A stretch of DNA of 64,000 nt from Ascidiella aspersa (GCA_963924565.1 OZ004609.1:36332001-36396000), one strand, 5' to 3'; shown: positions 9,358 to 60,637, counted from the stretch's first letter. A program made the numbers and translations. Notes: generated by a model from the sequence alone, not told the origin.

Positions 9358-12129
9358 TCTAAATGTGTTAAAATGCTAAAAAAACTTCACAAAAATGGGC
9401 AAAATTTAGATATAAATCTAAGCCAAAAACAAAGTGTTAATTAATAAAAGATTTCAACAACCTTAACAAAGAATGAAAGCCTGTTTATTATTTGTTTCAT
9501 TGTCAGCAACTGTACGAATGTGTTAATGTATTGGTATTATAGAAACGTATCAAATTTACCTACAATTATTTAACTGCTAAATCAACTGCTTGCGTTTATC
9601 AGTTAAATCATTTGTCCAGTCGGTTTTCCGTGTTGGTTTTAAATTCGCCGCTAATTGAGTATGACTGAGCGTAGTAACAGCAATTCCTTTGGGGAAAGTC
9701 ACAGACTCGAAATCAACCGTTAAACTGTTCAGTTGACGCAGTGCGATTTCGCAGTAAAAAAAGTGTTCAAAGAAGGGCTATTTTACTGCTTCCTTAAAAT
9801 CGGAAACAACGGGCGCTAACTAATTCCTCTTCCGCATCTGGCCAGGCTAAGCAGCGTGTGCTGCGCTGTTAAAATTCCAAACCGTTATTTGGACGGCTCG
9901 AGCATTTAACGAGCAGTGCGCCGTCCATGCGCGTGTTTGCTTAGTCTTTATGGCATTAATTATATTGCTCTCGCTTGCGCGTAATTATTCCACAGGCTCC
10001 ATTCGTTATAACCGGCATATTGGAATTGTCGACGTGACACACTGTTGATTCTGACGTAACAATCAACAATCACAGGTTGTGTCTGTTTGAATTAGTGCTC
10101 GGCCGTAAAACGCGTTTTTGTCTCTGTGTGGCCGTTTTGTCTTGCCTGTGTGGCGGCGAGGGGCTTGACACGAATTAATTGTTTAATTTCGTGATTTTCT
10201 GATAGCACCGCTCCGTTTGCTTTGGCCGGGCGTGGTGCCAAACCCTTTGTCAGCTTAGTTAGTCTAGTGCGACTCAAGATCCGAGAGAATCTTGTGTGTG
10301 TAAAATTCATCTATAACTAGATTCTAATTAGCGGAAGTGTAGCTTTCAGGCAGTTTTCGGTACATTTTGTTAAATGTCAGTTGGTTTAAGGCACAGTTTG
10401 TGGGAGGACTCTTTAACTTATGTAAACTGTTTAGTTTTGTCTTTAAACCAGTTTAGTTTGAAAACTGTGTCTTGCTAACATTTATAATGAACAAAAAAGT
10501 TGTTTTACGCAAATATTTTGATCTTGTGAGTTGTGACTCGTACTTCACTTAGTCGTAAAAATGTTGAAAAGTAGTTTTGCCGATTTTTACCTGGGCACAC
10601 AATCATCAACTGTGGGCTGTGTCTATGTCTCGACGAATTCAAATGTTTGTTAGGTTTTGACGTCATTAAGTGACGTTACATCTTCGCCAGTAGTTGTTTA
10701 CATTAAGCTTGGCTTTGGCATTTGGAATTAACAATACGAGAAATATTGGAAATAAGTGTTTTAAATGTACTGTATCTCATTACATTAATGAAAAGTGAAG
10801 GTCTTTTTATGAATCCTGGTTCTTTTTTATTCCAGTTTAAAGCGAAACTGTTGATCACGGCATTTTATTGAGCTTTGAATGTCAAAGTGTTTTACGAACT
10901 TTTCAATCCTAGCTTCATTGACATCTAGTTGCTGTTCAGGAATTTTTCGGGATGTGCGCCGTTATCGATTCTAACAGTTATTTTTCAAACTTGTTACCAA
11001 TATGACGTCATAACCAATTAACCGCGTTGTGTGTTTCGTCACAATATTCCAAACGAAAAGTGACATACCGTAGGAAAAATAGCGTTTTTTAGGCCACTAA
11101 AATAAAAAGGAATAGGCGGAAATAGTGTATTAATTTGTTTGCTGAGTTTTATTTGTCCCAGAAGTTTTCTTTCAACGTTATTATTTTTACTAAATGTGAG
11201 ATCGTTAATATGAAAATTGGATAATATTAACATCGAAAGTCTCAACAAGCTTTTACCTCAATTTTAATCGCTATGTTTTTAGCATTTTTTTACGCCGCGT
11301 GTAAAAATTTACTAATTCCCCTTTACCCCCCACCTTCTATTTTCTCTTACTAATTATTTTAAATATAGCAATATGAACAAGTTTTTATTATAAAATCACC
11401 ACCAAAAGTTTTAAAGTGCTAGTAACCACATTGTAAACAAGCTTACGTGAAAATTTCAAAATGCTTTTAGCTCAATTCTAATCGCTCAGTTCTAGCACTT
11501 TGTTACGTCATCTATAAAACCAACAACCCCTTTTCACCCCCGCCCCCCCCATTTTGCTACCCCGGACCCCCAACGCGCTTTTCTCAGACGCTTTCGTCTT
11601 GTTGGGATTAACCGAAGAAATCCTGGTGATTATAAAATGGCGCCCGTTATTTACGCGCCAAAGGAACAATAGCACGGTAAAGCCGCCAGAAATAGGCCCG
11701 AGAATTCATCTCTCGGATGTTTAATTTCGAGTCGGCCTTTACTCATCACAGACCTGGCTTTTATCAATGCTCTGCTGTTTTGTTTTGATGTGGTAAGCGG
11801 TCCTTTCGTTCTTTAACCATGTTTCTTGGCGAAGATATGGGTTGTTTTTTAGTCAATATAGTTAGGTTGAACAATTTTGGGTAAACTTAAAGACCAGCTA
11901 AACTTGATTTGTGTTAATTAAAGATATATGGTTTGCGGCTTTAGAAGGAATTTTAGGTAAGAAAAACAGATGTTTTTTTTTAATGAAATCAAATGAAAAA
12001 TGCGGCTTGTCATGGCGCTACGCAAAAGAGAATAGTTCAGTTTTATTTAGGCTACTTCCGGTAGTACACACAGAAATTGGATGTACAAAAATAGAATAAA
12101 GTCAGTTTAGTGCGGTTTAAAAATAAGAA

Positions 12130-12640: not shown

Positions 12641-13082
12641 ATGACGTCACAACCTGAAGGTCACGCACGATCGCCGACTATAATCGGTCATAGTGATGTC
12701 ATAAAACCAGTATCTGTGACGAAACATTCCTCGGCCGCCGCCGAAAGTTCATTCCAAGGTCAGATCCTGTACAAAGCCAACGGTTCCGCTCTGGTGATTT
12801 CCGCCTCGCTCGTTTCGCAATACGCAGGAGCGTATGACGTCACAGACGACATTGTTGACGTCGTAACGGGAAAGGATTCAAACGCAAACAACAACAGCAA
12901 TAACAACAACAGCATTGGCAACGAAACCGCTGTTGTGCTGAATAACACTGAACTTGAAAAAAATATTCCAAAACTCCCAAAGTTCCTTACGTTTCTCGAC
13001 ACTAGTGGGCGCCCCGGTGAGCGTGGGAACCCGGAAGTGCTTGATTCGATTGGAAATAATCCCGAGGACATACATGGAGATA
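12641..13082 (+). CDS. ZFHX3/ZFHX4: ZFHX coding exon 1 (start ATG; acceptor ttccag ends at 12591, 49 nt upstream)
   Basis: ATG 12641 is preceded by an in-frame TAA (12632-34). Encodes MTSQPEG...[16 protein letters not shown], the conserved N-terminal ZFHX motif. Donor A|gtaagg at 13083 (phase 1). An alternative phase-1 donor G|gtgagc at 13017 is equally plausible, so the 3' end is uncertain. Confidence 0.8.
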
Positions 13083-16000
13083 GTAAGGAAAAGAGAATAT
13101 TTAAGAATTGTTTTATATCAAACAATAAAGTTGTACCTAATAAAGCTTGGTCGTCAATGAAAATCATGATATTCCTTGAAAAACATTTATTTATAGAAAG
13201 TTTTCGGAAATTATATTACTATATCTAGTGGTTTACTATGTAGTGTATATTTTATCTCTTCGTCAAGGTTTTGTCTTTGTTTTTTATTTCTCTTTTTTAT
13301 TTGTCCAGCGGTCGTCATGAAACCAAACGTGCGGACGTTTCTAGTGCGCGCTTTCGACGACGTCGTGAAAAACCGCGTCAACTCCCTTCATTCCTCCGAG
13401 AGCGACGCACATTTTAACGCCGCTAAAAATCCCGGGTAAAAACAATTCACTTTCTGTCTCCTAAATATTTCGCTAATCACTAACCAAACCTTTTTACGCC
13501 ACAGTGATTCATCCATTCTGATGTGCTTCCCGTGTCGACTTAACTTCAATTCGATGACGTCATTCGTACAACACGTCACAAACGAGCATGACGTCACAAT
13601 TAACGGACGCGAGTTGGAAGATTTGAATAATAACAGCAATGTAAACATGGTTCTACAGGTAAGCTTTGATGCCTTTATGACGCAATAGAAGGGGCATTGA
13701 TGATGATGAATCTTAAAGCTAAAAAGTTGGATTAAATTGACATCATCTTGATAAAGACGTTCCAATGTGTTAAACTTTCTTGGCACACATTAACTGATAA
13801 GGCGCAAAGAATCCTACCACATTTTTTCCAGGGATTTATAATGGCAAAATTGTTTGTGTTAGGGGGTGCGGGTTAGCGTAAGTTCGGGTGGGTGGAATAT
13901 TATTAGTATTTTATTTATATTTATTTTGTCCACTTTTTTTTCAGTTTATTTTATTTGTTAAATAGATTCTGATTTTATTTTATTTGTTAACAATGAAATC
14001 CATATAATGATATGCCGGTGGTATTAGCTAGGTAAATGCCGTCGTTAGGCTTAATGTCAGATATTAGTGTTGAGTGGTAAAAAATATTTAATAATGCAAC
14101 TACCAAAAATGCAGATGAGCATTCCACTAAAATGAAACGAAAATTGTTGCAATATCTATTTAAATACAACAAAGCCAGTGATTCCACATATTATTTGCTT
14201 GTATTGAAATATAAGTGGTAGGATTCTGGCCAGCTACACTGATGATGATACAAGCTCGTATCGAAACGTCTTTATCAAGATGATTTCGATTTACTCGACC
14301 TTTTTGACTATGACATTCATTATCAAGCTACATTATCGATCCCTGCATTGTGTACCGACAAAGTGGCATTGTTTTGTCAATATAATGAGTTCTATATAGA
14401 TGGGTGAGATTTAATAATTCGACATTTCACCGGAATCCAGGCTTGAATCTCACTTCAAAGAGCCGCTGTAATAATAGCGCGGTCTCTCTACTTATCGCAA
14501 TCTCATTAAATCGAGTCCTTCTCACGTTTTAAGTCGTAAACAGACTCAGCAGTTTGTCGCCTTATCGGCCTACATAGATTGGGCGCAAATTAAGGGGTGG
14601 CGGGAGGCGCTAAAAGGGGTGAAATGCCAATTACGGGCCCCTGCCCTCTCAGTTAAATGCCATTTACCCGTTTCTGTCTAAGTGAAGGCCATATTTAGCC
14701 TTATATTCGATTCAAAGCGAATTTTAACGTTAAAACTAGGTGTGAAAAATCTGATTTACCCCGATAGCGTCGTTTGTATCAGAAGATGGTGAATTATCAT
14801 TTGGAGTAAAATGTCGGGTTGGCTAAACCAACTTGCGCACCCAGCAGCTAATTGGCACCTAACTGTGGATTTGAATTAGACTTCGAAGTCACTTTAGGCA
14901 CTTCTTAATGCATTTGGCACCAACCGTGATTCCTATCGCGCATTTGAAACGCTGGCAAGAAAAAGGTGTTTTATTTGCACCTGGCGTTTTGCCTTCAAGT
15001 ATTGCTTATCTATTTCAAATTGACCTTTTTGTTTTAAACGTGCGTTAGAAATTAAAGGTTCACCTAAATTTTTTGCTCGCCTATACGTCGGGTTTAATAA
15101 AATACAAGAAAACATACCTTTAAAATACCACAGAATCCAATTTTTAAAAACAGAATTCCCACAATTTTCAAATTAAATAAATTACAAAAATATGTTACAA
15201 CAACTACAGTACTCTTTCGCACCAGCAGTTATAATAACTCCCAATTGTTAACAAGCTTCAAAATGATTTATCCGATTACATACAAATTCGATTTCAACAA
15301 TGGGCCCTGACTTTATATAATTTTTCACTCAAAAATTTAAAAGATTGTGCCCTTAATTTATTGTCTTGAACCACATTTTGAGAAACTTTGTGCTAAATTT
15401 TAATTGCATGCCTTTAAACCACTAATCTTTTTTCATAAAGGGTCGAGTAAGAGTTGACGATCACTTCATTAACTTACATATAATTGAAAAGCAATATAAT
15501 GCAACAAAACTGTAGTGAGCCTTCATAAATTGCGGTTCAATTTGAAATTTCACCAATCAACAACATTTTAAATATACTTTATCTTAATTACGGAAATATT
15601 CCGCAGACCAAAAAAATTCACACTGCGGCTGGTGGGTGGTTACCCTGCTTTAAACGAAATAATTGCTTTTATAATACACAAAAACTACGAAAGTGACAGC
15701 ATCTTAATGTATTTATTTTTATTTTCCCAGAAATCTTCGGACGGAAAGAGCCTCGTCTGTTTGCTGGAACCTGTGGCGCCACCAAGTGTACAAAAACAAC
15801 CTGACGTCAAGGAGGAAGAAGGGAGTTCCCCTGAGCCAATACCGTCAGTTAAGGTAAGTTAAAAAAATATTTCCAAAAAATTTGGACAAGCCAACGTTTG
15901 CAAAAATTAGGGAAAAATTGGGAATAAAACTGTAGATTGAGCTACAACTGTGGTTTATCCAAAAACTGAGTTTTTTGTATGTCTGGGAAAACAATATTAT

Positions 16001-19000
16001 CTATTTTGCTCTTCTGTTGCACGAGGTTAGAATCAACTAATGTAAATTACCGATAAAAGAATACCTGTGTTTATATAATTAATCAACAAGCATGTTTACC
16101 CAAAAGCAAGCATTTGAACATTTGCAGTGATCACATTTTGGTTATAGAACAGATTTTGACACGACCTTTCAAACAGGGGTCCAGAAATTTTTAAACGGAC
16201 GCCCAGAAAATATATATGGTTTACGTGGACAATGCCCGGCATGGATTTTTGTAAAGATGTCGTCATAATATGACGTCATTAGAAAGGTTGAGAATCTACT
16301 ATTTTAGGTCGCACTGTTGCGCAAATAGGGAACTTATTCAAAGCAGTATAGTAAGATTTAAATAAGCCCTTTTCCCGGCTTATAAGTTTGATTTTAGGTT
16401 ATTTTGGCATTAAAATATAAAACGTTGTTTGTCGCAAAACTTTAAACACAAAAAAAATACAATGATTTGTGTGTTCTTACAACCTCCCAAACCCGATTGC
16501 ATTATCCGGAAGCGCATTAAAATCGCGCGATCGGCTCGAATTACCATTGTCACGTCATCATAGGTGCACAATGCACATTTGTTAGTCAAAATTTGCTGAG
16601 AACAGCGCGAAAAAACGGCAAAGTTTCGCAGGTTGAATAGAGCGTAGTGCAGCTGCTCTCAGGCCAGCGCAGTAATTAACGCATCCGATGTTGCTTGAGC
16701 TCCCACCATTCAACCAGTGGTGCATGGAACTGTTTCAGGACGCCAATTGCGCTAATTGCGCCGCAAACGCAAAACGCGTATGTCGCTCATAGGTTCCCAC
16801 AGGCAAAAATCGCGGTCTAGAGTACAGTTGAGGTTGTATAATTTCAAGAATCCGGAGCAAAATTCGGCTAATTTTGATTCGAATCTCTTTTGCGAATGGC
16901 CTGTGTGCTTTAATTTTTGTTCTAACCTAATTTTTGTTTTGCTTTTAATGTCACGTCGTCCGACGGCTTTTTGGACCCTCATTTGGAAAATAATTTTGAC
17001 GTTTGTATTTACTGTTTTTGTTAGATGACTTTACAATCATTTAGGTGAATTTGACATTAAACATAGGCTATGATAAAAAGCACCAATTTAGCCTATCAAC
17101 ATTTGCTATTCACATTCTCATGAAAATAGTTTTAGTTCGAATTATAATGCCATTCCAATTTAAAAAACTGAATGCTACAATTTTAATTCTAATCTAATTT
17201 TAGAAAGCTAAAATAAATCTAGTTGTCCAAGTCTGGCCCAGAGGTAGATTGTTGTATTTTTTAGATTTAGTTGAGTTGCTAAAGACGTAAAACCCTTAAT
17301 TGTTTGTTAAAAGCTGATTTCTTTAAATTTGTTTGTTAAGGTTTCTTCGGTAAGCTTAACAACGTGAATTCCTATTGTCTTATATCTTGGTAAATAAGGT
17401 TCTTAGAAATAAATCATTACGTTTTATTAAGGAATAATCTTTTTATTTTAGATTTTTAGATTAAATGCTCTTGTTTTATCGAAAGTTTATGAGTAGTTTT
17501 TCCATATTTCTAGGTCTATTTTTGCTGTAAAAAAATTAGTTTTCTTGTTGGTGTCTAAAAACAAGTAGATGTTTACAGGCGAATCGAGAATTTAATGTTA
17601 ATAAAGCGCTTTACGAGAAAAGCCCTCCTTGAATATGCAGTCGTTTAATGGTTTGATAATTTACTTTTCGTAACATACTCACTACTTTCTGCATAGTCCT
17701 CAATTTTATCAAAATATTTAGGCATTTTTGTTATTTGACTTGCATGATTAAAATACAACACTTCTGAAATACTAATTTTTGATCGGTCTTAGAGTTAGTT
17801 CCGAGCTTGTCTTTTAAAACAGATAAAAATTTTCGGTAATTACCGGCCCAGTTTACTAATAACAAATAGCCCGATTCGTTTGCACAACGTTGCAGCAACG
17901 CACCAATCTTCTAACATTACAAGACTTACCAGGAAAACTCATGTAGGTTTCGAAATCCGGTAGTTTGCATCACGCGTTTAAAATTTAAAACTTTTCAAAT
18001 ATTCTCAAATTTTTATCAGTGTCAAGTTCAGTTCATTCCACCTCTTTCAAAAACAGGTTAAAATTTTCGCAGCTTATAACATTTTAATAATAACGAATTG
18101 CCCAGTTCCTTTACCCAGGCTAATTGCTCGAACCCCGGCCGGCGATGTTCCCATAGAATCAAATGGCCTTGCCAAATCTCGTTTTATTGCGCCGGTATAG
18201 GCGAGATAAGGCCGGTTAAGCGTGGGAGTTCGCTAATGAGCAAGACACTCAGCCGGGGATTGCTTCCGATTCAGGCATTTTCTTGTGCGAAAAACCAGCG
18301 CTGACGCCGACCCGCTACGCTGAGCGGTCAAGTCCCGCGAAAAAATGGCCCTCATTTGTCAGTTTGACGCTGATTTGCAAGAGATTTTTTGTGAAGAGAA
18401 TATCTTGATCAATATTCCAGGCCAAAATATTGGCCCTTACTGAAAGATTAAGGTTTAATGCTATAACGTATGCGCCACAGATGCTAGTTAGAGCCAGTTA
18501 GGCGTGATTTCTTTCGAAACGTTTGTCACTTCTGATTTGCGAGAGTTTTTTAAGGGAATGGATTTATCATCGTCTAGGCTGAAATATATTTGCCACTTGC
18601 TGTAAAATTTAGGTTTGACGATAAATAAAGTCAGATAGGCTGATTGTCTTTTTAGCTGAACGCAATTTCCTGGATTGTTCGATATAGTAACCATTCTGGA
18701 AAACTTTAGCAAGTTTTATTTCGCCTAACCCAATTTCTACTTATGTACAAGTTCGTATTAATGTATATTCGAAATTTCATTGCAATTGAAACACGTTGGT
18801 GCTCATTAAAAAAGTTGATGACACTTTCAGCCAGTCAGTTGTGATTGAGATTGTCAGTTAGCTGTAAGGGCTGTTGTCTTAAAGAGCTTTTAGTAAAACT
18901 GTGGCTGTGGTATATTTTTGTTTAGTAATATTTCAAGATAAATTAAAAATATACTTTATGGCCTATTGTCTAATCATTGCCTTAAAATATTTCGTAAAGC

Positions 19001-49000: not shown

Positions 49001-52000
49001 AATCTTTGCTAGTTGGTTTCATGAGTTTGATTTAGCGTTTTAAACTATTTTTTCGGGTAGCTTTTATTTCTAAACTGCAAAATTAAATGTTAAACCACAC
49101 GCATAAACATTTTGAGAACAATACCAGTCAAAAACACATTTTATCATAATTGTAATTGTTCACAAACTTATAACGAACCATAATATCTACATTCTTCCCC
49201 CTGTCTTTTTACCCGATTTGAATAGGTTGCCGAGACCTTGGTTAACAATTACAATTACCAGAGGAGCTGTTTTTGATTAATATTACTATGCCTGGTAGTT
49301 TATATATTTGAAGAACAACTTTTTTATTAACTGAGTATAAAAAACAGTTTAGTTGTAGAAGCTTTAATTAAGGGCCTTTCGATGATTTATGATGTAAGCA
49401 AACCCATTGCGTAACTCTATTTAATTAGGAACAAGGCGTGTTTGGCAATCTGCCGGCAAACAAAATGATTTAAAATGACGTCAGGCCTTTAGAATATCTA
49501 ATCACCTTATGTAAAAATCGATTTATTTATATCAATACAAGCTATCATTTGAGCATGATCGCTTTACAAAAATCAATTCTGATTTTAATGAACGTCTGTA
49601 ATATTAATGATTTCCAACCGCATTTTAAATACATTCACTGTCTGTCCTTAAGAATAATAGTCGTTGCGTGTTTAAGAACCCAAAAGTAGTTTGACAAATT
49701 TTTATTTTATTTAAGAAAAAGGGGCTTTAGGGAAAAAATGGGGATTCATCCCCTGAAACAGACAGCCCATGTAGGGAGCCTTTTTTGAACTTTTCAATTT
49801 ATCCTCCCTACTTCTGTATGGGCATTGATATTCATTTTACGCCTAACTACAACCCCAATCCATTGTTTTAAGAATTACTCGAAACGTTCACAAAATTCCA
49901 CCTACTCTTGTATGAAAGGGGGCTTTACCCCTATAATGCGCCCCTGGGTAAGTTACTCACATCTTTCAAAGCAGTGAGAGCCGAGCCTTGCATTCTAATT
50001 CGCTTTCCCGCCCGAACCAATCACCGACCTTTCCAAGCGAAATCACGCGTAACCATTTAATTAGTTCTATCGCGGGCCTGGGCTTAATGAGATGGCAGCA
50101 GTTCTGCCCTAGAAGCCAGCTAACCCCTGTGAAGCCTCTAAGCCTGATCCAAGCTCATACCGCTGCTCATGCTGCCTTAGGTTAGTGGTAAGGCGATTGA
50201 AAGACTCTGCAATTAAGCCAGTTTACTTAGGCTCGTCTAGCCGAGTGCGATGTTGGGTTTAAGGCCTATATGCAGATGTATTCTGTCACATTTAAAACTT
50301 GTTGCTGTTGCATAGATGCTGGGCTGTTTGTTCAGTTGAGGCGATTATATACAGTTTATCCGCTTTTCTGGCTATTTTTGTTTGAAAAAGTTCCACAGTG
50401 GTAGGTTTTTACTTTCATTTTCGGTTACTTGTCATGTGTTTTGTTGATGCCTAAAGAGTCAGCGTACGAAAGTAATATTTACTGGCTGCTGTTGTGTAGC
50501 TGGGACTATTTAACACAGTTATACGAATTACTGAGTACATTTGTGGGAAAGAAATTTTGCATATTTTAGTTGATTGTAGTTATTGCTGGAAAACATATCT
50601 GTTGATGTTCACAGATGTCAGTGTACCGCTGTAATATCGTACGGGTAAAAATACTAGATTAAGCTACTAACTGGGCGCGTTTTTGTCAGTTTTGCGTACA
50701 AAAACATACGTGTTTATACTTTTGTACAGCTTTCCTAAAACGTCTAAATATTTTGGAAAAAAATTGACTTAAAAATCGCGACTTTTCGTTTGAGTCTTCC
50801 AACCTGTGTATTTTAGGCGTAAATCTTGTCAACCAACTCGCGATAAATATTTGCTTAGCATTTACGGCGCTAAGAAGTTATGTAGGGGTTTCGCTGATTC
50901 ATTGTATCAACATAATCGGAAGCGGCAGGTGCACATTCTCGCTGGAATACTTGTCCAAGGCCGAGTACAAATAAAGTTAACAGTGGTTAACATATTTTAG
51001 CCTTGGTGTGGACTTGAGGTTAAACGTGTATGTGAGAGCATTTAGTCGCCGGGGAAGATTATTACTTAATTACAGTTAATTAAAAGTTTAAGGTATTTTT
51101 GTACCAGTTGAGCTATTCCGTTTAAAACGCAGAGCTTCGTGTGCTGCTAAGTTGAGATATAGTGATATTGCTTTCAATTTAGCACATCAGTGTCAATAAG
51201 GATTATACTCTTTAAAAATTAATAGCCTTTGCTTGCTGGCACTTGCTTGGTATAAGTTTGAAGTCCAGTCATGCAGCTGGCTGGAGTTTCGCAATTAGAC
51301 TAATTACTGCTGAAGCAATTAGCGTGGTAATTAAGCGCTAGCTGTTGCCACAATTAACGCGCTGCCTGTTGTATGGTATCAGGTTGTAGTGCTAGAAGTT
51401 TCCTTGTTCAGTGTAAAAAACTTTAAATCAAATAAGAAAGATTTTGGAGCATAATGGTTGGAGGTTGTAGTAAGACGTAATAAGAATATCAAAGCCCATA
51501 CAGAAGTAGGTATCATTTTGAACGTTTCGAATAACTCTTTGTTTATTTTAAACATTAGTCTTTATTCATTCAACGATGTTGAAAATGAAGGAAGATTTGG
51601 TTTAGCTATACCATTGTTTCTCAACCAATGGACCCAAACTCGGGTCGCAGTTCGATTTGGCCTGATCTCCGACTGTACTAGTTTTACATGGTTAGATTTA
51701 TTACGATTTGTACTGAGCGATATTCCTCCAAAATGTGAGAAAACTGAGCGACATACGTAGGCATGGCTCATAAAAATAAATTCGAATTTATTTGTTTTGT
51801 TTCATGTTGTGTTTACTTTTCAAAAAGTTCAGTGTGAGTAATTAAGTCGCCCAAGCTGTTTACAATTAAAAAAGGTTGAGAAACACTGAACTAAAAAAGG
51901 TTCGGGCATTTTTATCCCATTTTGCAGCATTTTTTTTTTCATTTTGCAAAGTTTTGGGCCTATTTGGCTTGTTTTCTCTTTTGTTGCTGGTAAAATCATC

Positions 52001-55000
52001 ACATTTCGCCACAACTATAAAAATTGGGGCAGAAACGTTTTGGAAACAGAAACAGAACCCGGTAAAAGCACCTGTGTGTCAGCCAGGCAATTAAAATAGT
52101 TCTCCAATCACGCTAATTCGTCTCTGGTGTAAGAGATACGGACAGCTTAATCGGGGTTTGTCTCAAAACACACGATTTGTATGGCCTGGTGTGTTTTCTG
52201 TTTGCCTACTACTTATCATTGGTTGGGTCGGGATGTCGCCTATCTCTAAGTTACTTGTTTCGCCGAAGATATTCGCTTTACACGAAACGTGAAGATGTTT
52301 AAAGTTGATTGAGCTGTTAGCGGCAGTGTGCTGTGTGGCTTCTGCTTTTTAAATGTGTTTTGTAGGTTTAATAACGCAGTAGACAAGCAAGCCTAATTTT
52401 GTTTGATTCTCAATTGTTGCTTTGTAAACTGTATGGTTTAAGATATCTTTTGAAACAAAAATTTGGTGTTTTTAGCTTGCACCTGTAAAAACTGTGATAT
52501 CTTACTATTGCCAATGCAGTGGCCCGTGTTTTTAAGGGTTATTAAAGGACCAAAACATCTTATCAAAATAAAGCTTCTACTTTTGTAACCACAACAGAGT
52601 ATTAGCAGTTAGTTGATCTAATATATCTTTAATGAAACCTGTATATGCCTGATTTCGTTAATGCATTGTTTCGTAATCTACGTTTTTCCTACTTCATATA
52701 GAAAGACGTAATTAAACAATAACTGTATTTGAATATCTTTAACCTAAATATTTCATTGCATTATTCCAGCCTAATTAGGACGATATTCTTCCTTATAGGC
52801 AAATATAACTTGCGAGCAAAATGTCAAAGAGAACGACAAAGAATCGTCAAAGACCCTAGACTTGAACATAACACAACCCACCAGCACTCAAGAAAACCAA
52901 GCCCAAGACGCATCTTTCAAATCCACCTGCAACAGTGACGTCACAAAGCCTCCCAGTGACATCACAAACCTAACCTGTGCCGAACCAAATGAGTCAGAGC
53001 TCGTGCTGGACTTATCCAACCCAGCAGCCGTAGTCTCGGAGCAGCCCGCCGCGTCGATGATGTCATTCGGTGCTGACGTCACAACCTCCATCCCCCACTC
53101 GGCGATGATGATGGTGGCGACGAAGCATGACGTCATACATTCGAGCGAGAATTCGCTCTCTTCACGGGTGTTTTCCCCCGAAGCATCTGAACCCCAGGAA
53201 ATAATAAAGCCTTCTGTTGTAAGTTGAATATTTTATTGAAAAAAATTAGTTTTAAGCAAAAAGCTGAACGAAATAAATCGCAAGTTTTATCATTTAAATT
53301 AATTGTATATATTTTTTTATCTTAAATCTTGTAAAATTCGTTCATTGCGTTCCTAAATCTTAAAGATATAACATTTAAAACAGATTTTTTTGGAAAAACT
53401 ATTTTTTTTTTTTTTAAGCAAATGCGATTGAGTGTGAACTGTGATTGTTGTTTCAGTTTTTATTAAGTAGTTCGTTTTTTAATTTTTTTTTTTCAAATTA
53501 ACCACTTAATTGTATATCAAAAGATTCTTAACTTTCCTAATAAAGTAATTGCTGTTCTATAATTCAAAGGTAAATTTAAAGGTGAAGTTATTATTTTCTT
53601 ATTAAAAGAGCCAATTGTCGAGTCAACCTTATTTCCAAATATATTTTATACACTAAATTAATGACGTCACGTTTTTATGACGTAGTCATCTGTGTCGTCA
53701 CCGCCCTCGATGGTCGTCGAAGCGTTACAGAGACCTTTCGTGAAAGATGAACGGTGGTTGGGCAATCACGAAGATGAAAACAACTCACGAAGCAACTTTA
53801 AAACTCCGGTGAGACAATCAAGACATGATTCAGTGACAGTGGTTGAATCGTCTATCAAGGAAGCCAAAAAAAATAAGCTTTCTAATTATTATTGTCACTT
53901 TTTTCGAAAGATCCTAATTATGAATGAACGGATTGATATTATTTGTTTAGTTTATTTTTTAGTTCAGATCGCAAACTATAGGGAGTTCCAATTGAAATCA
54001 TTTTCTTGTATAAAACAATCACGTTGTTTTTATTAACCCAGAAACAGTGTTTCTTAACCTATGGGTCGCAGCCCCGAAATTGGGCTGCGTATTATTTGGT
54101 TGGGTCGCCGACTGCAGTATAGTTCTATAAGACGAGACTTATTGAGATTGGATGTGAGTTTTCTCTAAAATTTGAGAATATTGCGGTAGCAATACGAATA
54201 CATTGCTCTTATTTAAGAAATCGCACTGATAATGCTAACTGCTAATGTCTTGTACACTTAAAAGTTCAGTAAGAGAAAAGGTTCGTCATAACTTCGCCGT
54301 TGCACTTACGCTTTAGTTTTTGGGTCATTGCGAACAAATATTCTTAATTTAGAATTATAACAATTATCTCAATTTATACAGAAGCGTCCCAGCGCTATTT
54401 AATTAAAACAGTGTTAAGTTAATAGCTAAAAACCGATTTTTACTCTATTTGTTGCTTCAGGAGAGCCACAAGGTTAGTGACAGCTTCGCCGGTTCTTCGA
54501 TGGACGTTTTGTCGATGTCTTTGTTCCAATCGCGCAACTCCTGCAAGACCCTGAAGTGTCCACACTGCAACTGGCACTACAAGTACAGGTGAACGCAGAG
54601 ACTGTGGAATGTTTTAAAGCTGTGATCCTCAACCTTTTTGTTGTCGCTACCCCTTGCCAGTTTTCAGTTTTCCATTAAAAAAAAGAGTAAAGGAGACTCA
54701 AAAACACGACTGGTTCACTAAATCAAATGTTGTTAACATAATTGTTAGACTGGGTAGCTTTTCACTCTTTTGCTCCATAGACTGCTATTTTTTCTTTTTT
54801 TTCGTGTGACAACTAGTACACAGCGACCCCCCTGACACCTCTTTTGACCCCTTTTGGGGTCGCAACCCCCCACATTGGGAACCACTGCTGTATAGAGATA
54901 TGTACTTGCTTTTAATTTGCTTCCTATTTTTTCCAAACTATTGAAACGAATATTATTCTGTTTCGTTCAGTAATATTAGATTTTTTAACCTAGTGATAAA

Positions 55001-58000
55001 AGACATTTATCTAAGTTTTATTTTATTGTTCAATCGAAAAACAAAATGACAATAAATGCTTTAAAATTTTTTTTTTTCTGACGTAATGGTTTAACATAAA
55101 TTTCTTGCTGCTTGACACAGCCTGATATTGATGTAAATAACAATATAGCTTGAAAATAAAAAAACCTTACTCATAAAAGGTGGAAGGCAATTTAATAACC
55201 ATCATTTTCGATGTTAATTCGTTGCTGCAGACAAACCCTTGAAGCTCACATGAAGGAGAAGCATTTAGAAGACACAACCGACTGTATGTATTGCAATGCT
55301 GGTCAACCACACCCAAGACTTTCAAGAGGGGAAAGCTATTCGTGTGGTTACAAGGTATGGTGTACTATTTGAAAACTAAAATATTTATGCTATACTATTT
55401 GAAAACTGAATTCTGTATTCTATATTCTATATTCTATACTACTTAAAAACCTCAACCACCAGTCATTTTTCATATTTCATTAAATAGTCTCTCAAACTGT
55501 AGTTTTTAATTTAATTTTTGCCATTCCAAAAGCATTGATATTTAAATTCGCTGTAGATTAAAATTAAAGACTTGTTTAATATATGAAAATAGTTTTTTTG
55601 GTTTTTAATATAAATATTACAATTTTAAAAGGATTTAGTTTGATGGTCGCAAGTTGTTTTTAGGTTGATTTTATAAATTTTTAGCAACATTTTCAAAAGA
55701 TGAAAAAACAACGTGTGAAAATCAATGCAAAACACGTTAGTATTGCAAAAAAAATTACGACAATTTCCCACGGTTTTTTCGCAACTTTTTGCTCAACTCC
55801 GTGAGAAAAGGTTGTTTGTTGATCGTGTGAAGTAGCCTCAGTAGGTGATAGTTCACACCCCGGGGTTCCCCGCCCCTTTAAACGCCCCTTCTTCAATTGG
55901 TTAAAACCAAACCAAACCCTTTAAACGCCCCCTACTCGTGAATACACAGTTTCACCTGTTGTTGATTGGATCACGTCGAGGAAAAGGTTGGAGTAAACCC
56001 CGATCGTTTTCTGGGAGAAAAAACTTGTAGTTTATTCACAACTCGATTTAAATCAGTGGTTATAAAAGTATATCGGTTTTATTTGGAGCTATCCGATAAT
56101 ACCAAGAGGTAGTATCGGCCATTGTCCAATAATACCAAGAGGTAGTATCGGCCATTATCCGATAATACCAAGAGGTAGTATCGGCCATTATCCGATAATA
56201 CTAAGAGGTAGTATCGGCCATTATCCGATAATACCAAGAGGTAGTATCGGCCATTATCCGATAATACCAAGAGGTAGTATCGGTCATTGTCCGATACTAG
56301 GGTGATATTGGCGCCGATCTGATATCAAATTAATCGAAACACTTACCAGCAAATAGTGGGATGCTTGTTCTTTCGCACGTCGCTTAAATAGAAGTTGCGC
56401 GTAATTTTTGATCTATGTATTAAAACGACTTTTAAACGCTCTTATTGGCCTACAACAGTGTGTGACCTGTTTTAATACAAAAATTGTTTTTTTTGTTTGT
56501 TTTTTACATTAGATTAAAACAAGGATTGCATCTAATAAGTTCACAGAAAAAATTTCATCAGGTCAAAAAACAAAAATCATCGTTTGATTGTTATTTTTAT
56601 TTTTAGCTAAGATGTAAGTTGATTGCCCTAAAGAGGATTATCGAAATAGGCCATCGAAACGCTGGTATTTTTTCAAGAAAATATTTGTCAGACAAACACT
56701 TTTATAAATGACGTAATTCCAGTTTTGACTAAATTTTAACTCTAATCTAATTTTTGAATGGATTGCGCTAATTTTTGAATGAATTTTTGGCTAACATAAA
56801 GAAGTTTTACCAAAAGTGCTACTTGGTCCAAAAACATTTTTATTCCCTCAGTCGTAACAAAGAAATTGGATTAATAATTTTCGGTCAGAACGGTTTGGCT
56901 CTGGCCATCAAATAATTCTAATTGGTTGTATTTCAACCAGCTGTACTCTATTCTGACGTGAGCCTACGTAAGGCAAGCTAATGAACTTTATTGCCAGTCT
57001 TTAGTGCCCGAAGCACCTGCTAGTTACTTTTAATTCAACCCGAGCCAAAACACTTACCACGGAATCCTTCCACTTTAAGTCGCCCCAAAGACCATGGGGT
57101 ATACAGGTGGTAAATAGCACCGTGGGTTACAAAGGGGCGCTATCCAACCCATTAGTGCAATTATCTTTTAAACCTCTTAATGAGTTATATCTATGTAAAC
57201 TAACAGAACAGAAAACGCTCTTATTCAGGCGTTCTAAACTTTTTTTAACGCTGATATCTAAAGATTTTTTATTTCGCTGGGACTAGGGTTGTGGCCAAAA
57301 AATTCAGTTTGATAAACGCCACGTGTAGTTTCCTCTAAGCCAGTGTCTGTTGAACTTTTTTGAACCAGGCCTCACTTTTGTGTTTACAACATGTTAGCCC
57401 CCCTCTAGCTCTAAAGTATTCCATTATAGTGGACAATCTATCCGTATCGAAAATCCAGTGTGAATATACCCTTTAATAATCTCTTTCCAAACTTTATTGT
57501 TTTCTATTTGAAAACCGCACCAAACAGGGTTTAAAAAACCCGCATTTAGCCCCCACTCACCCCCAATAACTTACCCCGGTTTCTTGCATCGCTTCCGCAG
57601 CCGTTCAAGTGTACAGTGTGCAACTACTCGACCACCACAAAGGGCAACCTTAGCATCCACATGCAATCCGACAAGCATCTCTACAACGCCCGATCTCTAC
57701 AGCACAGACAGCACGAGAGCATCAGGCAGCATCAGCAAGCAGCCGTATCGTCCGTCTCGAGCGCCCTAAGCAAACTGGGTTCCGCTGGGGGGCAGCAGAG
57801 TGGAATTGCCGCTTCGCAGTTTGAAGAGGTGAGATTTCGATGTTTTATCTTATTTGCGAACTTTCGAGCAATATTCGGCTTTAAAATGGGAAAGTGTGTT
57901 GATATGCGAAAGTAGATGGTTGTTAGATACAAAAGAGATTTTCTGTTTTTTTGTATTGTTTTTCAAATGTAATTAAAACAATATCTGTAAAACAAATACT

Positions 58001-59590
58001 AAGTGAGTTCCGTATTATTTAAACAAGATGTCGTGTCTTGTATAGAGTGTTTTTCAACTTGCTTCTCCACCGAGCCTGCGTAGCTCAGTCGGTAAATCGA
58101 TGGTCCCGTTGTGGCCGAGGTCGTGAGTTCGAACCTCACAGCGGTTTGTTTTACGAACAGGATGCAGCAGGCAACGGTGACATATTGTTTTTAGTTTGCT
58201 ACTATAATGCACAAGAATCACAGCTTTTAACCTTTTTGATTCCGAAACTTCAACCTATAACACTGTTCTATCATAAGAATTTTAATGCAAGCAAAGCGAA
58301 GATAAAAACACTGTCCTGCGTCGAGGTTTGAACTCATAACCTCAGTCATTCCGTCAACGTTGCCTTACTTTTGTTTTGACAAACATTGTCGCGATCCGAT
58401 CGGATACCACATTAGTACTATGTTCAGATAGGTGATATTGAAACATTAAAGGCATTTTTTTGTTAGGCTAACATTTGTTTCAGCAGTAACACGTTATCGC
58501 AAGTCAAGTCCCAGTCCAAGTCACATCATTTTAAAAATCTCTATCGCAGAACCAAGGGTCTGCGGTTCGATCCCCGAGCACGGAAAACTTCACCAGCTAC
58601 CGCGAAGTGGAAAAATCGATGCCGCGTCGTCGGCGCTCGTCGAGCAAGACTGGGGCCGAGGGGAATCACCCTGGGGGGCGCCAGGGCCCCAACAAGTGGC
58701 GCTGTGACGTTTGTGGGTACGAGACGTCGATCGCGCGGAACCTTCGCATCCACAACACGAGTGAGAAGCACGCACAGAACGTCGCTCTGCAGGAGAGGGG
58801 ACTCCTCAAGCATATGAGACATGCAAGTGGAGGTTAGTGGGGAGGTTGTCACTTGGTCATTACTTATGTCAGTTGGCAGGTTGTCACTTGGTCATTTGGA
58901 TATTTCTATGGCAGCTCTTTACTTGCTCATTACTTATGTGGGTGGTGAGGTTACCACTTGGTCATTACTTATGTCAGTTGGGAGGTTATCACTTGTTCAT
59001 TGCATATGTGGGTGGAGTGGTTATCACTTGTCTTTTGGATAATCAAATGCCAACTCTTTACTTGGCCATTTACAATTTTTTTCTTCACCTGGTCATAAGC
59101 AGTTACTTAAAGTTTGTCACTTGGTGATATACGATATACATTTATTATTAGAACTCTTCACTTGGTCACAAGCCGTTGTATGTCACTCGGTCTTTTGAAC
59201 TTGGTTTAAGTTCTTTACTTGGTCATTTTATCTACAAGTTGACAGGTTTAATTTTTTTTTGATTAGCTCTTTATTAAAAAGTAGCTGCTTAAGTTCCTGC
59301 TTGATCATTATTGCTTTCTTGTTAAACGGTTTATAGTTACAAATTTGCCCAACATAACGTGTTTTGTGATTTCATTTTGTGTAGTAATCTTGTGCAGGTT
59401 CTTTCAAAATGGAAAACTGGGACTTAATCATATTAGTTGGGTGTTTTTAACTACACCTAAAAGCTTATCCTCTTTTCCTTTTCAACCCTGTGTATAAACC
59501 TTTTTAAATTTCAACGTTTAGACTTACAAAACGATCACCACCTTCACCACCAACATGGAGATCGTCCACAACAACAACAACAACAACAGC

Positions 59591-59627
<37 letters not shown>

Positions 59628-60637
59628 GCAGCAGCAACAGCAAGGCATCGTCGACTACTACACCAGCGCTCTCAAGTCGCTACAGCAAAACCACAGCATC
59701 ATGAGCGACGCGAGCAACCATTTGTCAGCGGGAAACGACGAAGCTGAGAAGGCTCGGAAGCTACAAGCCGATTACCTCCAACAACAGCTTCTAATATCAC
59801 AGCAACAGCAGCTTCTACTCGCCCAGCAATACCAGCAACTCATGGTGGCCGCTGCAGCCGCATCTTCGCTACAACAACGCCTCGGTGGAGGGGTTGGGGG
59901 CCCTGAGGAACCGGGGAACCACCTGTTGCAAGCCAAACAGGCCCAGCTTTGGAAGCAGCTTTTCCCAAACGCCCCAGCAGCTGAGGGGAGTCCCCCGCCA
60001 CCCGGGAAGCCACTTTCGGTGAGTTGGTTTGTTTGCTTCGCATGTTTTTATTACTAGTTTACTTCTAGTTTTGTTTTTGCCGTAAATTTTGCATGTTTTT
60101 GTTTAATTTTTTTATTACCGTTTATTTAATTTGTTAATTTTTTCAGTGAATTGACTTTTGTTTTGTATTTTTGCGTTATTTTTCTCCTTTAGCCCATTTT
60201 TGTTTAGTTTTTGCTACTGCATCCCATACTAATATTTTTTTAACTTTACTTGTGGTAATTGCTTTTGCCATTTTTTTCAATTTTTTTTTCATTATTTAAC
60301 TATACCTGTTCGTCAACTTTGTAGATTAAAGTTTAATTAACTCAATCAAATTATTTAAACTCAGAAATTTCCACAAACTTCTGGAAATTTATAATCATTC
60401 CGAATTTTCTAAAATTCGTTTTCATATTTCCAGCCCGACCCTAGTGAAGTGACGTCATCTTGCATGTTCTCCTGTGACGTATGCGGCGTGTTCGGCACCG
60501 ACGACCTCGGCGCCCTCGACGCCCACACTCGCCGATTACGTCACGCTGACGTAAGCAAGGACGTTATGTCGAACGAATGGGTGACTCGGACTCAACGCGA
60601 AGGATACTTCTGTCGGTTGTGCAAGTACACAACCCCG
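12641..60637 (+). CDS. ZFHX3/ZFHX4: Zinc finger homeobox protein ZFHX3/ZFHX4 (ATBF1/zfh2) orthologue, 5' partial, 12 coding exons: join(12641..13082,13309..13435,13505..13658,15731..15853,52799..53218,53686..53808,54461..54588,55231..55354,57601..57828,58550..58832,59522..60018,60434..60637); continues 3' of window
   Basis: Manual splicing gives one open frame of 2853 nt (951 aa) with GT..AG introns and matching phases. It contains the family hallmarks in the expected order: [16 protein letters not shown] (cf. GEIVYQPDGSAYI), [154 protein letters not shown]. Confidence 0.95.
13309..13435 (+). CDS. ZFHX3/ZFHX4: ZFHX coding exon 2
   Basis: Polypyrimidine tract plus ttgtccag acceptor. Reads [23 protein letters not shown]...KNP. 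Donor GG|gtaaa (phase 2) joins the next exon in frame. Confidence 0.8.
13505..13658 (+). CDS. ZFHX3/ZFHX4: ZFHX coding exon 3 (first C2H2-type finger)
   Basis: ccacag acceptor. [51 protein letters not shown] matches the vertebrate PILMCFLCKLSF..SFVTHAVHDH..SAIIQ block. Donor CAG|gtaagc. Confidence 0.92.
13690..14357. mobile_element. Family B inverted-repeat element (arms ~130-140 bp)
   Basis: atcatcttgataaagacgtt (13742) mirrors aacgtctttatcaagatgat (14265). agaatcctaccac (13808) mirrors gtggtaggattct (14215). The right arm matches the 30939-31112 copy. Confidence 0.7.
14235..14274 (+). ncRNA. Minimal (short stem III, dimer-type) type I hammerhead ribozyme motif
   Basis: CTGATGA(14239-45)-T-GATAC/aagctc/GTATC-GAAA-CG-TC(14270). 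All core nucleotides are present, stem II is 5 bp, and palindromic ACGT replaces stem III. Stem I is weak (TACA/TTTA, one mismatch). Confidence 0.55.
15731..15853 (+). CDS. ZFHX3/ZFHX4: ZFHX coding exon 4
   Basis: ttttcccag acceptor. [18 protein letters not shown]... (cf. GIGKDKEPLVSFLEPK). Donor AAG|gtaagt, phase 0. Confidence 0.9.
19501..19765. mobile_element. Family A copy
   Basis: Two forward modules (gaatatcaaagcccatacagaagta) followed by an inverted cctacttctatatgagct. Confidence 0.75.
25670..26215. repeat. Degenerate C-rich/G-poor tandem tract (taacacccctaccc..tattttt units)
   Basis: About 550 bp with recurrent acccct(a)/ccccta motifs and very few G on the + strand. Confidence 0.75.
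26420..26735. repeat. Local tandem duplication (~130 bp unit; second copy longer)
   Basis: ctgcttactcccc(c)gccaaagataaatccgttt at 26420 and 26552. tttgagatacagactg.cactagtatggaaat occurs twice. Confidence 0.9.
27965..28050 (+). mobile_element. hAT-type MITE left end
   Basis: cggtgtttctgagcctatgggtcgcgacccaaagtggggtcgcg...ggtcgccgactgcattagtttacatggtta, same family as 51612 and 54045. Confidence 0.65.
30939..31112. mobile_element. Family B short palindromic copy with decayed hammerhead motif in its loop
   Basis: atgtagcttgataataaattgcaaagccaaaaaggtcgagtagatcg (30962-31008) pairs with cgatctactcgacctttttggctttgcgatttattattaagctacat (31066-31112). Spacer ctgaaggtgatagaagttcatacctaaatgtc aligns to 14239-14270. 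Confidence 0.8.
31853..31976 (-). mobile_element. Probable 3' end of a non-LTR retroelement (L2/CR1-like)
   Basis: Minus strand: stem-loop agggtgac..gacc-tttt-ggtc..gtcaccct, a second stem tgcacgtt/aacgtgca, then AATAAA and a (CTAT)3 tail. Confidence 0.5.
34037..34172 (-). mobile_element. Family A fragment
   Basis: acttctgtatgggctttgatatttattctacgtccaactacaacctccagccatta, the reverse complement of the module. Confidence 0.75.
42914..43028. repeat. 25-bp minisatellite, ~4.6 copies
   Basis: Unit tttgccggtgacgtcaaaaggtggt; gtgacg recurs at 42921, 42946, 42971 and 42996. Confidence 0.95.
46228..46273 (+). ncRNA. Degenerate Penelope-type hammerhead motif followed by AATAAA
   Basis: tca-CTGATGA-T-GGCAA/gagtat/TTGCC-aAAA-CG-TT-tga..AATAAA. 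Stems I (3 bp) and II (5 bp) form, but G12 is replaced by A. Confidence 0.45.
49807..49914 (-). mobile_element. Family A fragment
   Basis: cctacttctgtatgggcattgatattcattttacgcctaactacaacc...gaaacgttcacaaaat. Confidence 0.7.
51442..51555 (+). mobile_element. Family A fragment with intact terminus
   Basis: ttttggagcataatggttggaggttgtagt...aaagcccatacagaagtaggtatcattttgaacgtt. Confidence 0.75.
51612..51888. mobile_element. hAT/Charlie-type MITE, full length
   Basis: 15-bp TIRs CATTGTTTCTCAACC / GGTTGAGAAACACTG (1 mismatch), subterminal gggtcgc motifs, and a decayed 8-bp TSD agctatac/aactaaaa. Confidence 0.8.
52799..53218 (+). CDS. ZFHX3/ZFHX4: ZFHX coding exon 5 (Ser/Thr-rich linker)
   Basis: ttcttccttatag acceptor. 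140-codon open frame [27 protein letters not shown]...IIKPSV. Donor GTT|gtaagt, phase 0 at both ends. No conserved motif, so the assignment rests on splice signals and composition. Confidence 0.8.
53686..53808 (+). CDS. ZFHX3/ZFHX4: ZFHX coding exon 6
   Basis: gacgtag acceptor. [41 protein letters not shown]. Donor CCG|gtgaga, phase 0/0. Confidence 0.7.
54045..54125 (+). mobile_element. hAT-type MITE left end
   Basis: cagtgtttcttaacctatgggtcgc...gggtcgccgactgca, homologous to the 27965 and 51612 copies. Confidence 0.65.
54461..54588 (+). CDS. ZFHX3/ZFHX4: ZFHX coding exon 7 ([19 protein letters not shown])
   Basis: ttgcttcag acceptor. Diagnostic ZFHX motif [19 protein letters not shown]. 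Donor AG|gtgaac, phase 2. Confidence 0.96.
54620..54887. mobile_element. hAT/Charlie-type MITE
   Basis: Ends CTGTGATCCTCAACC ... TTGGGAACCACTG, internal gcgacccc/ggggtcgc motifs, decayed TSD ttttaaag/ctgtatag. Confidence 0.65.
55231..55354 (+). CDS. ZFHX3/ZFHX4: ZFHX coding exon 8
   Basis: gctgcag acceptor. (R)[41 protein letters not shown]. Donor AAG|gtatgg. Confidence 0.96.
56090..56297. repeat. 33-bp minisatellite, ~6.2 copies, each unit a hairpin
   Basis: Unit atccgataataccaagaggtagtatcggccatt at 56091, 56124, 56157, 56190, 56223 and 56256. Confidence 0.95.
57601..57828 (+). CDS. ZFHX3/ZFHX4: ZFHX coding exon 9
   Basis: ttccgcag acceptor. [29 protein letters not shown].... Donor GAG|gtgaga. 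Confidence 0.96.
58074..58146 (+). mobile_element. tRNA-derived SINE head / tRNA pseudogene
   Basis: A box TAGCTCAGTCGG, B box GAGTTCGAACC and a perfect T arm gtgag/ctcac. The D and acceptor stems are broken. Confidence 0.65.
58314..58370 (-). mobile_element. Second, inverted tRNA-derived fragment
   Basis: Minus strand reads gactgaggttatgagttcaaacctcgacgcagg, homologous to gccgaggtcgtgagttcgaacctcacagcgg at 58114-58144. Confidence 0.55.
58550..58832 (+). CDS. ZFHX3/ZFHX4: ZFHX coding exon 10
   Basis: tatcgcag acceptor. ...[32 protein letters not shown].... Donor G|gttagt, phase 1. Confidence 0.93.
58834..59226. repeat. Degenerate ~35-40 bp tandem repeat (gtcacttggtcattacttatgt...)
   Basis: acttggtca and variants recur about ten times directly after the exon 10 donor. 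Confidence 0.8.
59522..60018 (+). CDS. ZFHX3/ZFHX4: ZFHX coding exon 11 (His/Gln-rich, polyQ25)
   Basis: cgtttag acceptor, phase 1. (D)[16 protein letters not shown]25[10 protein letters not shown]...GKPLS. Donor TCG|gtgagt. Confidence 0.88.
59569..59643 (+). repeat. Coding (CAA/CAG)25 polyglutamine tract
   Basis: 25 consecutive Gln codons in frame, including a run of 12 pure CAA. Confidence 0.95.
60434..60637 (+). CDS. ZFHX3/ZFHX4: ZFHX coding exon 12
   Basis: atttccag acceptor. [31 protein letters not shown]...NEW...[12 protein letters not shown] (cf. LFQCAVCNKFTTDNLDML...DEW...YQCKLCRYNTQ). Donor CCG|gtgagt. The second half of this finger is not found in the window. Confidence 0.92.

Follow-up and report, generated by a model that had tools for sequence, protein, structure and literature searches.

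HIP1, the highly iterated palindrome of cyanobacteria (GCGATCGC), is an 8-bp palindrome that is 15- to 300-fold over-represented, occurs both within and between reading frames and is written into codons; it is conserved and thought to be kept by selection rather than by biased repair, while its function is still unknown (PMC5861425). Here, we found a comparable overlay in an animal, the ascidian Ascidiella aspersa, where the palindrome TGACGTCA recurs in a 64-kb stretch of DNA (OZ004609.1:36332001-36396000, the window) of which the + strand carries the 5' part of a ZFHX3/4-type zinc-finger homeobox gene; the homeodomains would fall downstream of the window. As with HIP1, one short palindrome is over-represented many-fold throughout the genome, within and between reading frames. 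Unlike HIP1, it occurs in an animal genome, the word is the canonical cAMP-response element (CRE), its excess in exons is ~17 times that seen elsewhere, and its occurrence is tied to CpG-replete DNA. HIP1 for its part is bacterial, lacks any exon/intron contrast and is not known as the site of a transcription factor; the resemblance is one of kind only.

Three further systems invite comparison. The word shares with the CRE of CREB/ATF dimers the identical 8-mer, the same purine/pyrimidine (R/Y) flanks, an occurrence in CCAAT-box promoter-like modules and the central CpG, through which methylation affects binding to the CRE. Classical CREs, however, are few and sit near transcription starts, whereas here we count ~45,000 copies, ~2/kb of unique coding sequence and near saturation of the synonymous opportunities. 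Like exonic splicing enhancers or 'duons', it is an exon-enriched nucleic-acid signal laid over the protein code that skews codon and amino-acid choice; unlike the enhancers, which are degenerate, strand-specific, mostly purine-rich and close to exon ends, it is one exact palindrome that is found in exon interiors and also in an intronless gene. Finally, the meiotic recombination hotspot M26 of fission yeast is likewise a CRE-type word (ATGACGT) inside a coding region and acts at the DNA level through the Atf1-Pcr1 bZIP dimer, but hotspots are expected to erode by gene conversion and not to accumulate.

We are highly confident that the overlay is a real nucleic-acid-level feature. Our preferred reading, to which we assign a probability of roughly 0.55 as a whole, is that TGACGTCA, or RTGACGTCAY in its extended form, is a highly iterated palindrome kept in CpG-replete DNA by a directional, nucleic-acid-level force and read by a dimer. 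The DNA read in total amounts to 244 kb, namely the window and eighteen 10-kb stretches over the nine chromosomes (26-41 Mb) of the 308.6-Mb assembly, with some counts made on 234 kb. The window has a GC content of 37% and a CpG observed/expected ratio of 1.14, i.e. no CpG depletion.

TGACGTCA is the most over-represented non-trivial 8-mer of the window, with 22 exact copies against 0.52 expected from dinucleotide shuffles (at most 3 in any of 100 shuffles). Nine copies lie in the ZFHX exons (2627 nt) and 13 in ~61 kb of non-coding DNA; the probability that at least nine of the 22 fall inside exons covering 4.1% of the window is 1e-7. The original prediction, made from the window's sequence, had listed nine exonic copies read as M/V-T-S (three) and D-V-T/I/K (six). 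All nine were recovered by exact search, in the frames claimed and inside an independently built exon model:

12642..12649: exon 1, overlapping the start codon, (A)TG ACG TCA = M-T-S
12835..12842: exon 1, TAT GAC GTC ACA = Y-D-V-T
13555..13562: exon 2, within zinc finger 1, ATG ACG TCA = M-T-S
13589..13596: exon 2, end of finger 1, CAT GAC GTC ACA = H-D-V-T
15802..15809: exon 3, CCT GAC GTC AAG = P-D-V-K
52936..52943: exon 4, S-D-V-T
53074..53081: exon 4, A-D-V-T
53128..53135: exon 4, H-D-V-I
60450..60457: exon 11, 17 nt past the acceptor, GTG ACG TCA = V-T-S

The placement of two copies in or against finger 1 (13555 inside it, 13589 at its end) also stood, as did the exonic position of the CpG-decayed variants, TGATGTCA at 12694 and about 53058 and TGACATCA at about 52957. 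A coding length of 2853 nt had been given; this figure was not matched by our own model of eleven exons, which sums to 2627 nt.

Could the excess be an artefact of composition, codon or amino-acid usage, repeats or mis-called exons? The exons are indeed richer in GC (52%) than the window. Yet synonymous-codon shuffles, which keep the protein and the codon usage (n = 3000), yield a mean of 0.55 copies in the ZFHX exons and a maximum of 4 against the nine observed, and codon-order shuffles, in which the codons are permuted, yield 0.046. The amino-acid-preserving control that had been proposed together with the nine positions therefore does not reproduce the counts. A second proposed control, run within the window, compared non-coding DNA of matched GC: non-exonic windows with a GC content of at least 0.48 hold one copy per 10.3 kb in total (0.10 copies/kb), far poorer than the exons, and the nine short introns between the ZFHX exons hold one copy in 8.4 kb, i.e. 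0.12/kb against 3.4/kb in exons. The exonic copies lie outside repeats. Over all tests, the observed counts exceed those from dinucleotide, codon-order and synonymous shuffles 16- to 200-fold, and within the 244 kb we regard an artefact as practically refuted.

The effect also holds in a pool of six unlinked loci with 8.9 kb of confidently called coding sequence (ZFHX, L018, glutathione transferase (GST), caveolin, TSP1 exons and a few others). Outside the window, exon calls derive from open frames, matches to Pfam and a small codon model. Taken by themselves as a coding proxy, long open frames proved too noisy, with a 2-fold contrast only, and gave way to Pfam-backed and codon-model exons. 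The pool contains 24 copies compared with 0.15 in codon-order shuffles, a ~157-fold excess that makes TGACGTCA the top 8-mer, and the other top coding 8-mers are fragments of it or CAA/AAC runs. We define a permissive site as a codon ending in T followed by Asp-Val and a codon starting with A, or as Leu/Met/Val-Thr-Ser. Of 31 such sites, 24 (77%) bear the exact word, where codon usage predicts 1.3. The peptides themselves are in excess as well: amino-acid shuffles give 6.0 permissive sites instead of 31 (maximum 17 in 5000), a five times excess, and the dipeptides DV (26 vs 9.8) and VT (30 vs 12.9) are 2.3-2.7 times too frequent, while VD and TV show no excess. Thus, the ~157-fold excess splits into roughly 5-fold at the protein level and 20- to 30-fold at the codon level, and the suspicion that the motif reshapes protein sequence is borne out. 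In ZFHX, exons 5-10, which encode conserved fingers, offer zero permissive sites; the copies are placed in the less constrained exons 1-4, in exon 11 and at those positions of finger 1 that vary.

Since both amino-acid-keeping and codon-order shuffles fail, the signal is independent of protein sequence, codon usage and GC content. The use of two frames with different peptides, together with the failure of the synonymous shuffles, excludes a protein-level cause, and the original view that the signal acts on nucleic acid rather than protein holds.

Is the word a peculiarity of one gene? It had been suspected to be a property of the lineage, and the counts agree: the genome contains 45,059 copies of TGACGTCA against 5,750 of the control word, which is TGACGTCA read backwards, and copies occur in unlinked genes. 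In the 234-kb sample the word is 27 times over expectation. The eighteen sampled stretches hold 37 copies, of which ~15-17 lie in ~7.6 kb of unique coding sequence by our own exon calls, roughly 2/kb compared with ~0.12/kb elsewhere. Within the sample read, the enrichment is genome-wide and far beyond chance. Genes outside the window that carry the word are:

L018: a single 751-codon open frame, 8 copies (0.40 in synonymous and 0.037 in codon-order shuffles), lying in the interior of a 2.2-kb exon
L004: a caveolin exon, 2 copies, one on the conserved DFxDVIAEPEG, which here reads DFSDVIAEPEG
L008: an intronless GST gene, 1 copy
L010: ADAMTS-type TSP1 exons, 3-4 copies
L005: one exon, at least 1 copy

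The GST of L008 has its best relatives in Clavelina, Phallusia and Ciona, at ~50% identity. At the motif site (L008 2766, protein P0009) it reads C-D-V-T, as does one GST of Ciona intestinalis (F7AHC2), while the other ten tunicate relatives aligned there read [D/N]-M-x (eight) and C-E-V-S or C-E-M-S (two). The C-D-V-T common to the Ciona protein may point to an origin of the word before this species arose. In 299 kb of unrelated GST-encoding metagenome contigs, 3 copies were found against 4.0 expected; one likely tunicate metagenome contig (present twice, L019 and L020) carries one copy upstream of its GST gene and zero inside it.

In the first 160 kb of chromosome 1, TGACGTCA reaches up to 0.6 copies/kb, and minisatellite-like runs with copies spaced 21-26 bp apart occur at G000:C1 3781-3838, 53111-53167 and 159958-160017; part of the genome total is therefore repeat-borne. 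Pairs of non-coding copies with 15-25 nt of common flanks, often beside an ACGTCA half-site (L002 686 and 7276; L007 1098 and 7731), imply that some dispersed repeat families carry the word. No copy was found in the complete rDNA unit of L013 (G000:C5:10500001-10510000). This stretch comprises a complete unit (18S, 5.8S, 28S) and part of the next, a 200-N gap and 57.6% GC; its lack of the word also speaks against a GC effect.

The specificity for the exact octamer is sharp. In 234 kb, GACGTCA is preceded by T in 59 of 59 cases, and genome-wide it follows T 45,059 times and A, C or G 7,630 times. Single changes at the outer positions of TGACGTCA show no enrichment, and the inner variants TTACGTCA, TGTCGTCA and the CpG-transition form TGATGTCA are mildly up (2.7- to 3.5-fold). 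The tetramer ACGT is at expectation (0.97), 6-mers are at 3-4 times, the 8-mer at 27 times and the RTGACGTCAY 10-mers at 57-94 times; that the enrichment starts only from 6-mers upwards, and that the unrelated GST contigs show none, also speaks against an artefact. Genome-wide, VGACGTCA stands at 0.61 of the reversed control; we rejected this as a sign of directional flux, as the dinucleotide make-up predicts about 0.55.

Beyond the octamer, the exonic copies in sense orientation have A10 G9 C5 T0 at position -1 and T9 C11 G3 A1 at +1, and non-exonic copies have the same R/Y flank preference. An 8-bp palindrome with R at -1 and Y at +1 is RTGACGTCAY, the textbook ATF/CREB site and full CRE. 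The non-coding copies of the window, with their contexts, are:

2388..2395: TGACGTCA, upstream of the gene
10658..10682: TGACGTCA followed 5 nt on by a TGACGT half-site, upstream of the gene
10995..11030: promoter-like module CCAAT-ATGACGTCAT-AACCAAT, containing the copy at 11003, ~1.6 kb upstream of the ATG
16271..16278: TGACGTCA, intronic, 418 nt past exon 3
24360..24367: TGACGTCA, large intron, context GTGACGTCAC
25578..25585: TGACGTCA, large intron
30383..30390: TGACGTCA, large intron, context ATGACGTCAT
42131..42138: TGACGTCA, large intron, context ATGACGTCAT
42914..43027: 25-bp minisatellite of 4.6 units (unit TTTGCCGGTGACGTCAAAAGGTGGT), large intron, three exact TGACGTCA
49476..49483: TGACGTCA, large intron
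53662..53669: TGACGTCA, intronic, ending 16 nt before exon 5 (start 53686), with a TGACGT half-site following

About 12 non-coding copies had been counted by eye, three of them in one minisatellite; there are 13, and the three in the minisatellite are as described. A copy near an acceptor, at 53662, is likewise present, with a gap of 16 nt instead of 17 nt and before an exon that is the fifth, not the sixth, of the rebuilt model.

The module at 10995-11030 is a CCAAT-CRE-CCAAT arrangement, and another CGTCA half-site follows after 20 nt; with its NF-Y boxes and CRE, it resembles a core promoter. A similar cluster lies at L010 9231-9620; most genic copies are found in exons. The two-fold symmetric flanks, the sharp specificity and the use in CCAAT modules suggest a dimeric reader of the duplex. 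To judge from the motif, an ATF/CREB-type bZIP dimer is the candidate, at about even odds.

A signal that respects exon borders so sharply (3.4 vs 0.12 copies/kb) could also reside in RNA, with the self-complementary octamer acting in spliced mRNA or in exon definition, either through pairing between copies or with a common RNA or through a splicing-enhancer protein. The use of both open reading frames fits this explanation, and pairing between copies would likewise give the R...Y symmetry of the flanks. Of the hallmarks of exonic splicing enhancers, we find the enrichment of exons over introns. We do not find a concentration at exon ends, as the eight copies of L018 sit inside one 2.2-kb exon, nor dispensability in intronless genes, since the intronless GST carries one; neither is the word strand-specific, being a reverse-complement palindrome with symmetric flanks, for which a protein that binds single-stranded RNA would have no reason to show a preference. 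Moreover, promoter-like CCAAT modules and non-coding repeats contain the same 10-mer although a role in mRNA does not apply to them, and rDNA offers no copy as a pairing partner. We consider an RNA signal quite unlikely.

If the word acts as DNA, it need not benefit the animal. A sequence-specific repair or gene-conversion bias could favour the palindrome in heterozygotes, for example by mismatch correction of the very-short-patch kind, or by a protein whose binding protects the chromatid it sits on against meiotic breaks, so that this chromatid becomes the conversion donor. Biased repair is the standard neutral alternative for iterated palindromes (PMC5861425). In line with such a function-free drive, the word is up everywhere in CpG-replete DNA (~0.12-0.2 copies/kb of non-coding sequence vs ~0.009 expected), and both the near saturation of permissive sites and the bending of proteins even in conserved domains (caveolin at DFSDVIAEPEG, zinc finger 1) look like blind pressure rather than placed regulatory sites. 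Conversion tracts, however, span hundreds of bases and should reach into introns of 400-800 nt, which are at the general non-coding level; fast turnover of intron DNA could rescue the argument. No sequence-specific conversion system of this kind is known in animals, and the CRE-dependent M26 hotspot predicts loss of the word, not gain. On balance, we hold a function-free drive to be unlikely, though the original prediction had itself named a biased mutational process as an alternative.

The distribution of the word follows the CpG status of the DNA. Loci with a CpG observed/expected ratio of at least 0.96 contain 58 copies in 174 kb against 1.6 expected, whereas loci at 0.56-0.86 contain 1 copy in 50 kb against 0.35 expected, and the decayed forms are not in excess there. 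Genome-wide, the CpG-transition form stands at about 1.6 times its control and CpG-decayed forms overall at about 1.6-1.8 times. The introns of word-bearing genes have a CpG observed/expected ratio of 1.17, yet their content of the word does not exceed the general non-coding level. Mosaic genome methylation is known from Ciona, and CREB binding is blocked when the central CpG of the CRE is methylated; our pattern fits both, and the cause could run either way. The link to an unmethylated state made in the original prediction receives indirect support, in that copies track CpG-replete loci; the state itself is read here from CpG content.

This pattern invites a rival, along the lines of the original prediction, in which the word is a methylation-protection or gene-identity code: a bound factor would keep unmethylated gene bodies free of CpG methylation, or mark them as self, and the copies would replace the gene-body methylation by which the other class of ascidian genes is marked. 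The confinement to CpG-replete loci and the methyl-sensitivity of CREB binding argue in this direction, as does the presence in the genome of C5 DNA methyltransferases. One full C5 DNA-methyltransferase domain is found in a single intronless 985-residue open frame at G000:C2:20080392-20081753, and a second, split methyltransferase gene is found on C8 at 25.98 Mb. A CpG-depleted coding array of 10 kb without any copy agrees with this rival as well. This array (L006 1-10000, G000:C2:15000001-15010000) is an uninterrupted 3333-codon frame of ~88 copies of a 114-bp (38-residue) Thr/Ser/Gly/Pro-rich unit, by its composition a putative mucin-like giant exon. Methylation could, however, simply destroy the word or make it useless; the decayed forms are only slightly raised genome-wide and not at all in CpG-depleted loci, the introns of the same genes are as CpG-replete without carrying the word, and the CpG-depleted loci of the sample contain no recognisable unique exons. 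A code of this kind appears rather improbable to us.

We return to the reading that we prefer, a palindrome kept by a directional force. The force would act on nucleic acid, not on protein, and favour the exact word, so that almost every synonymously permissive exon site would be driven to carry it and weakly constrained protein segments would be pulled toward D-V-T/I/K and M/V-T-S; the ZFHX gene of the window would be one ordinary example. The reader would be a dimer on double-stranded DNA, most simply of the ATF/CREB bZIP type, and the word would be kept only where CpG is not depleted, probably in germline-unmethylated DNA. In line with this, the genome encodes both bZIP proteins and C5 DNA methyltransferases. 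The force may be weak selection, to which a very large population gives effect; its scaled strength, as estimated from the 24 of 31 sites realised against 1.3 expected, is about 4.

Why, then, are exons so much richer? The exon excess may reflect either a task specific to exons or simply that exons last long whereas non-coding DNA turns over fast. In the latter variant, the pressure would be uniform on all unmethylated DNA; exons would persist, and rapid physical turnover would keep non-coding DNA from equilibrium. By a rough calculation, uniform pressure would enrich the word ~10-fold in young DNA and ~100-fold once equilibrium is reached, which comes near the observed values. In the former variant, the word would have an exon- or gene-specific task at the DNA level, for example as an exon or gene mark of unmethylated genes, as the original prediction had it. 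A bolder version would see a second, DNA-level code written over the protein code: unmethylated genes would have a CRE in their exons almost wherever the codons permit one, read by a bZIP dimer as a mark of chromatin state, of freedom from methylation or of co-transcriptional exon recognition, and changing amino acids even in conserved domains; this we find doubtful.

Several observations weigh against the directional-force reading. The density falls at exon borders from 3.4/kb to 0.12/kb in adjacent introns, over no more than a few hundred bases. A chromatin or transcription signal in DNA should work in introns just as well, and such a stop is not expected of a chromatin-level or recombination-level process, while an ordinary RNA motif is at odds with the symmetry. 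There is no expansion of the bZIP family, with about 12 matches to the bZIP_1 profile in the genome. The L006 frame offers ~88 V-T-S sites and bears zero TGACGTCA, although it is CpG-depleted (observed/expected 0.51) and recently homogenised, and would need three substitutions at each site to arrive at the word. The reading draws on 244 kb of genome, with exon calls outside the window taken from open frames, Pfam and a codon model. Finally, one RNA run barely covers the ZFHX gene: exons 1 and 3 have no reads, exon 2 has 1-3, and splice joints are absent.

The host gene was rebuilt from open frames, splice consensus and family resemblance, the exons being searched singly, which gave the following model:

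12641..13082, + strand: exon 1, from the ATG; donor uncertain
13505..13658, + strand: exon 2, first C2H2 finger
15731..15853, + strand: exon 3
52799..53218, + strand: exon 4, unconserved, Ser/Thr-rich
53686..53808, + strand: exon 5
54461..54588, + strand: exon 6, first part of a finger
55231..55354, + strand: exon 7
57601..57828, + strand: exon 8, C2H2 finger
58649..58832, + strand: exon 9, finger; acceptor uncertain
59522..60018, + strand: exon 10, poly-Q and Q/L-rich
60434..60637, + strand: exon 11, two more C2H2-like fingers

Exon 8 contains a C2H2 finger, and its nearest Atlas clusters bear the ZFHX3-type finger PF24056; the sole match to PF24056 in the whole genome lies 2.5 kb past the window end on the same strand. 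As in ZFHX3/4 genes, there are many C2H2 fingers at wide spacing. For exon 4, no relatives came up in a word search. At its only good donor (GTAAGG at 13083), exon 1 ends in phase 1, while exon 2 needs two preceding bases, and we found no GT donor that joins exon 1 in frame to exon 2; a micro-exon, another donor or another first exon is absent from the model.

Some further features of the window and its surroundings were observed. Just upstream of the start codon, at 12143-12634, lie two copies of a ~90-bp unit, with similar open frames on both strands. The only deep RNA pile-ups of the window, at 12151-12603, are repeat-derived and carry mismatches, and hence stem from other copies of the repeat. 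A 35/70-bp tandem repeat at 58836-59064 starts at the exon 9 donor, and a clean 33-bp tandem repeat of 6.3 units occupies 56090-56296 in intron 7. Two elements of the large intron (30933-31113 and 31854-32059) are ~180-200 bp long, have many copies on all chromosomes and on both strands at 75-93% identity, and look like miniature inverted-repeat transposable elements (MITEs), i.e. palindromic miniature transposons. Around the window's region, at G000:C3:32.4-38 Mb, matches to the protein-kinase domain cluster by the dozen; many have a single in-frame TAA, and the whole looks like a large tandem kinase family with pseudogenes.

In the full-text literature, outside which most subscription journals fall, we found no description of a hyper-abundant TGACGTCA in the exons of any animal, tunicates included. 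If true genome-wide, the overlay would be the first animal counterpart of the cyanobacterial highly iterated palindrome, and would show with unusual clarity how a signal other than the protein's own measurably alters protein sequences, with 77% of the synonymous opportunities taken and the peptides themselves raised 5-fold. In practice, the word will bias analyses of codon usage, dN/dS and motif discovery in this lineage. It also raises the questions of whether exonic transcription-factor sites can serve as gene-body marks and how they relate to the mosaic methylation of tunicates. Ascidians can be electroporated, and their populations are huge and polymorphic; in such a tractable system, it can therefore be asked how strong selection or drive on a DNA word is compared with selection on the protein.

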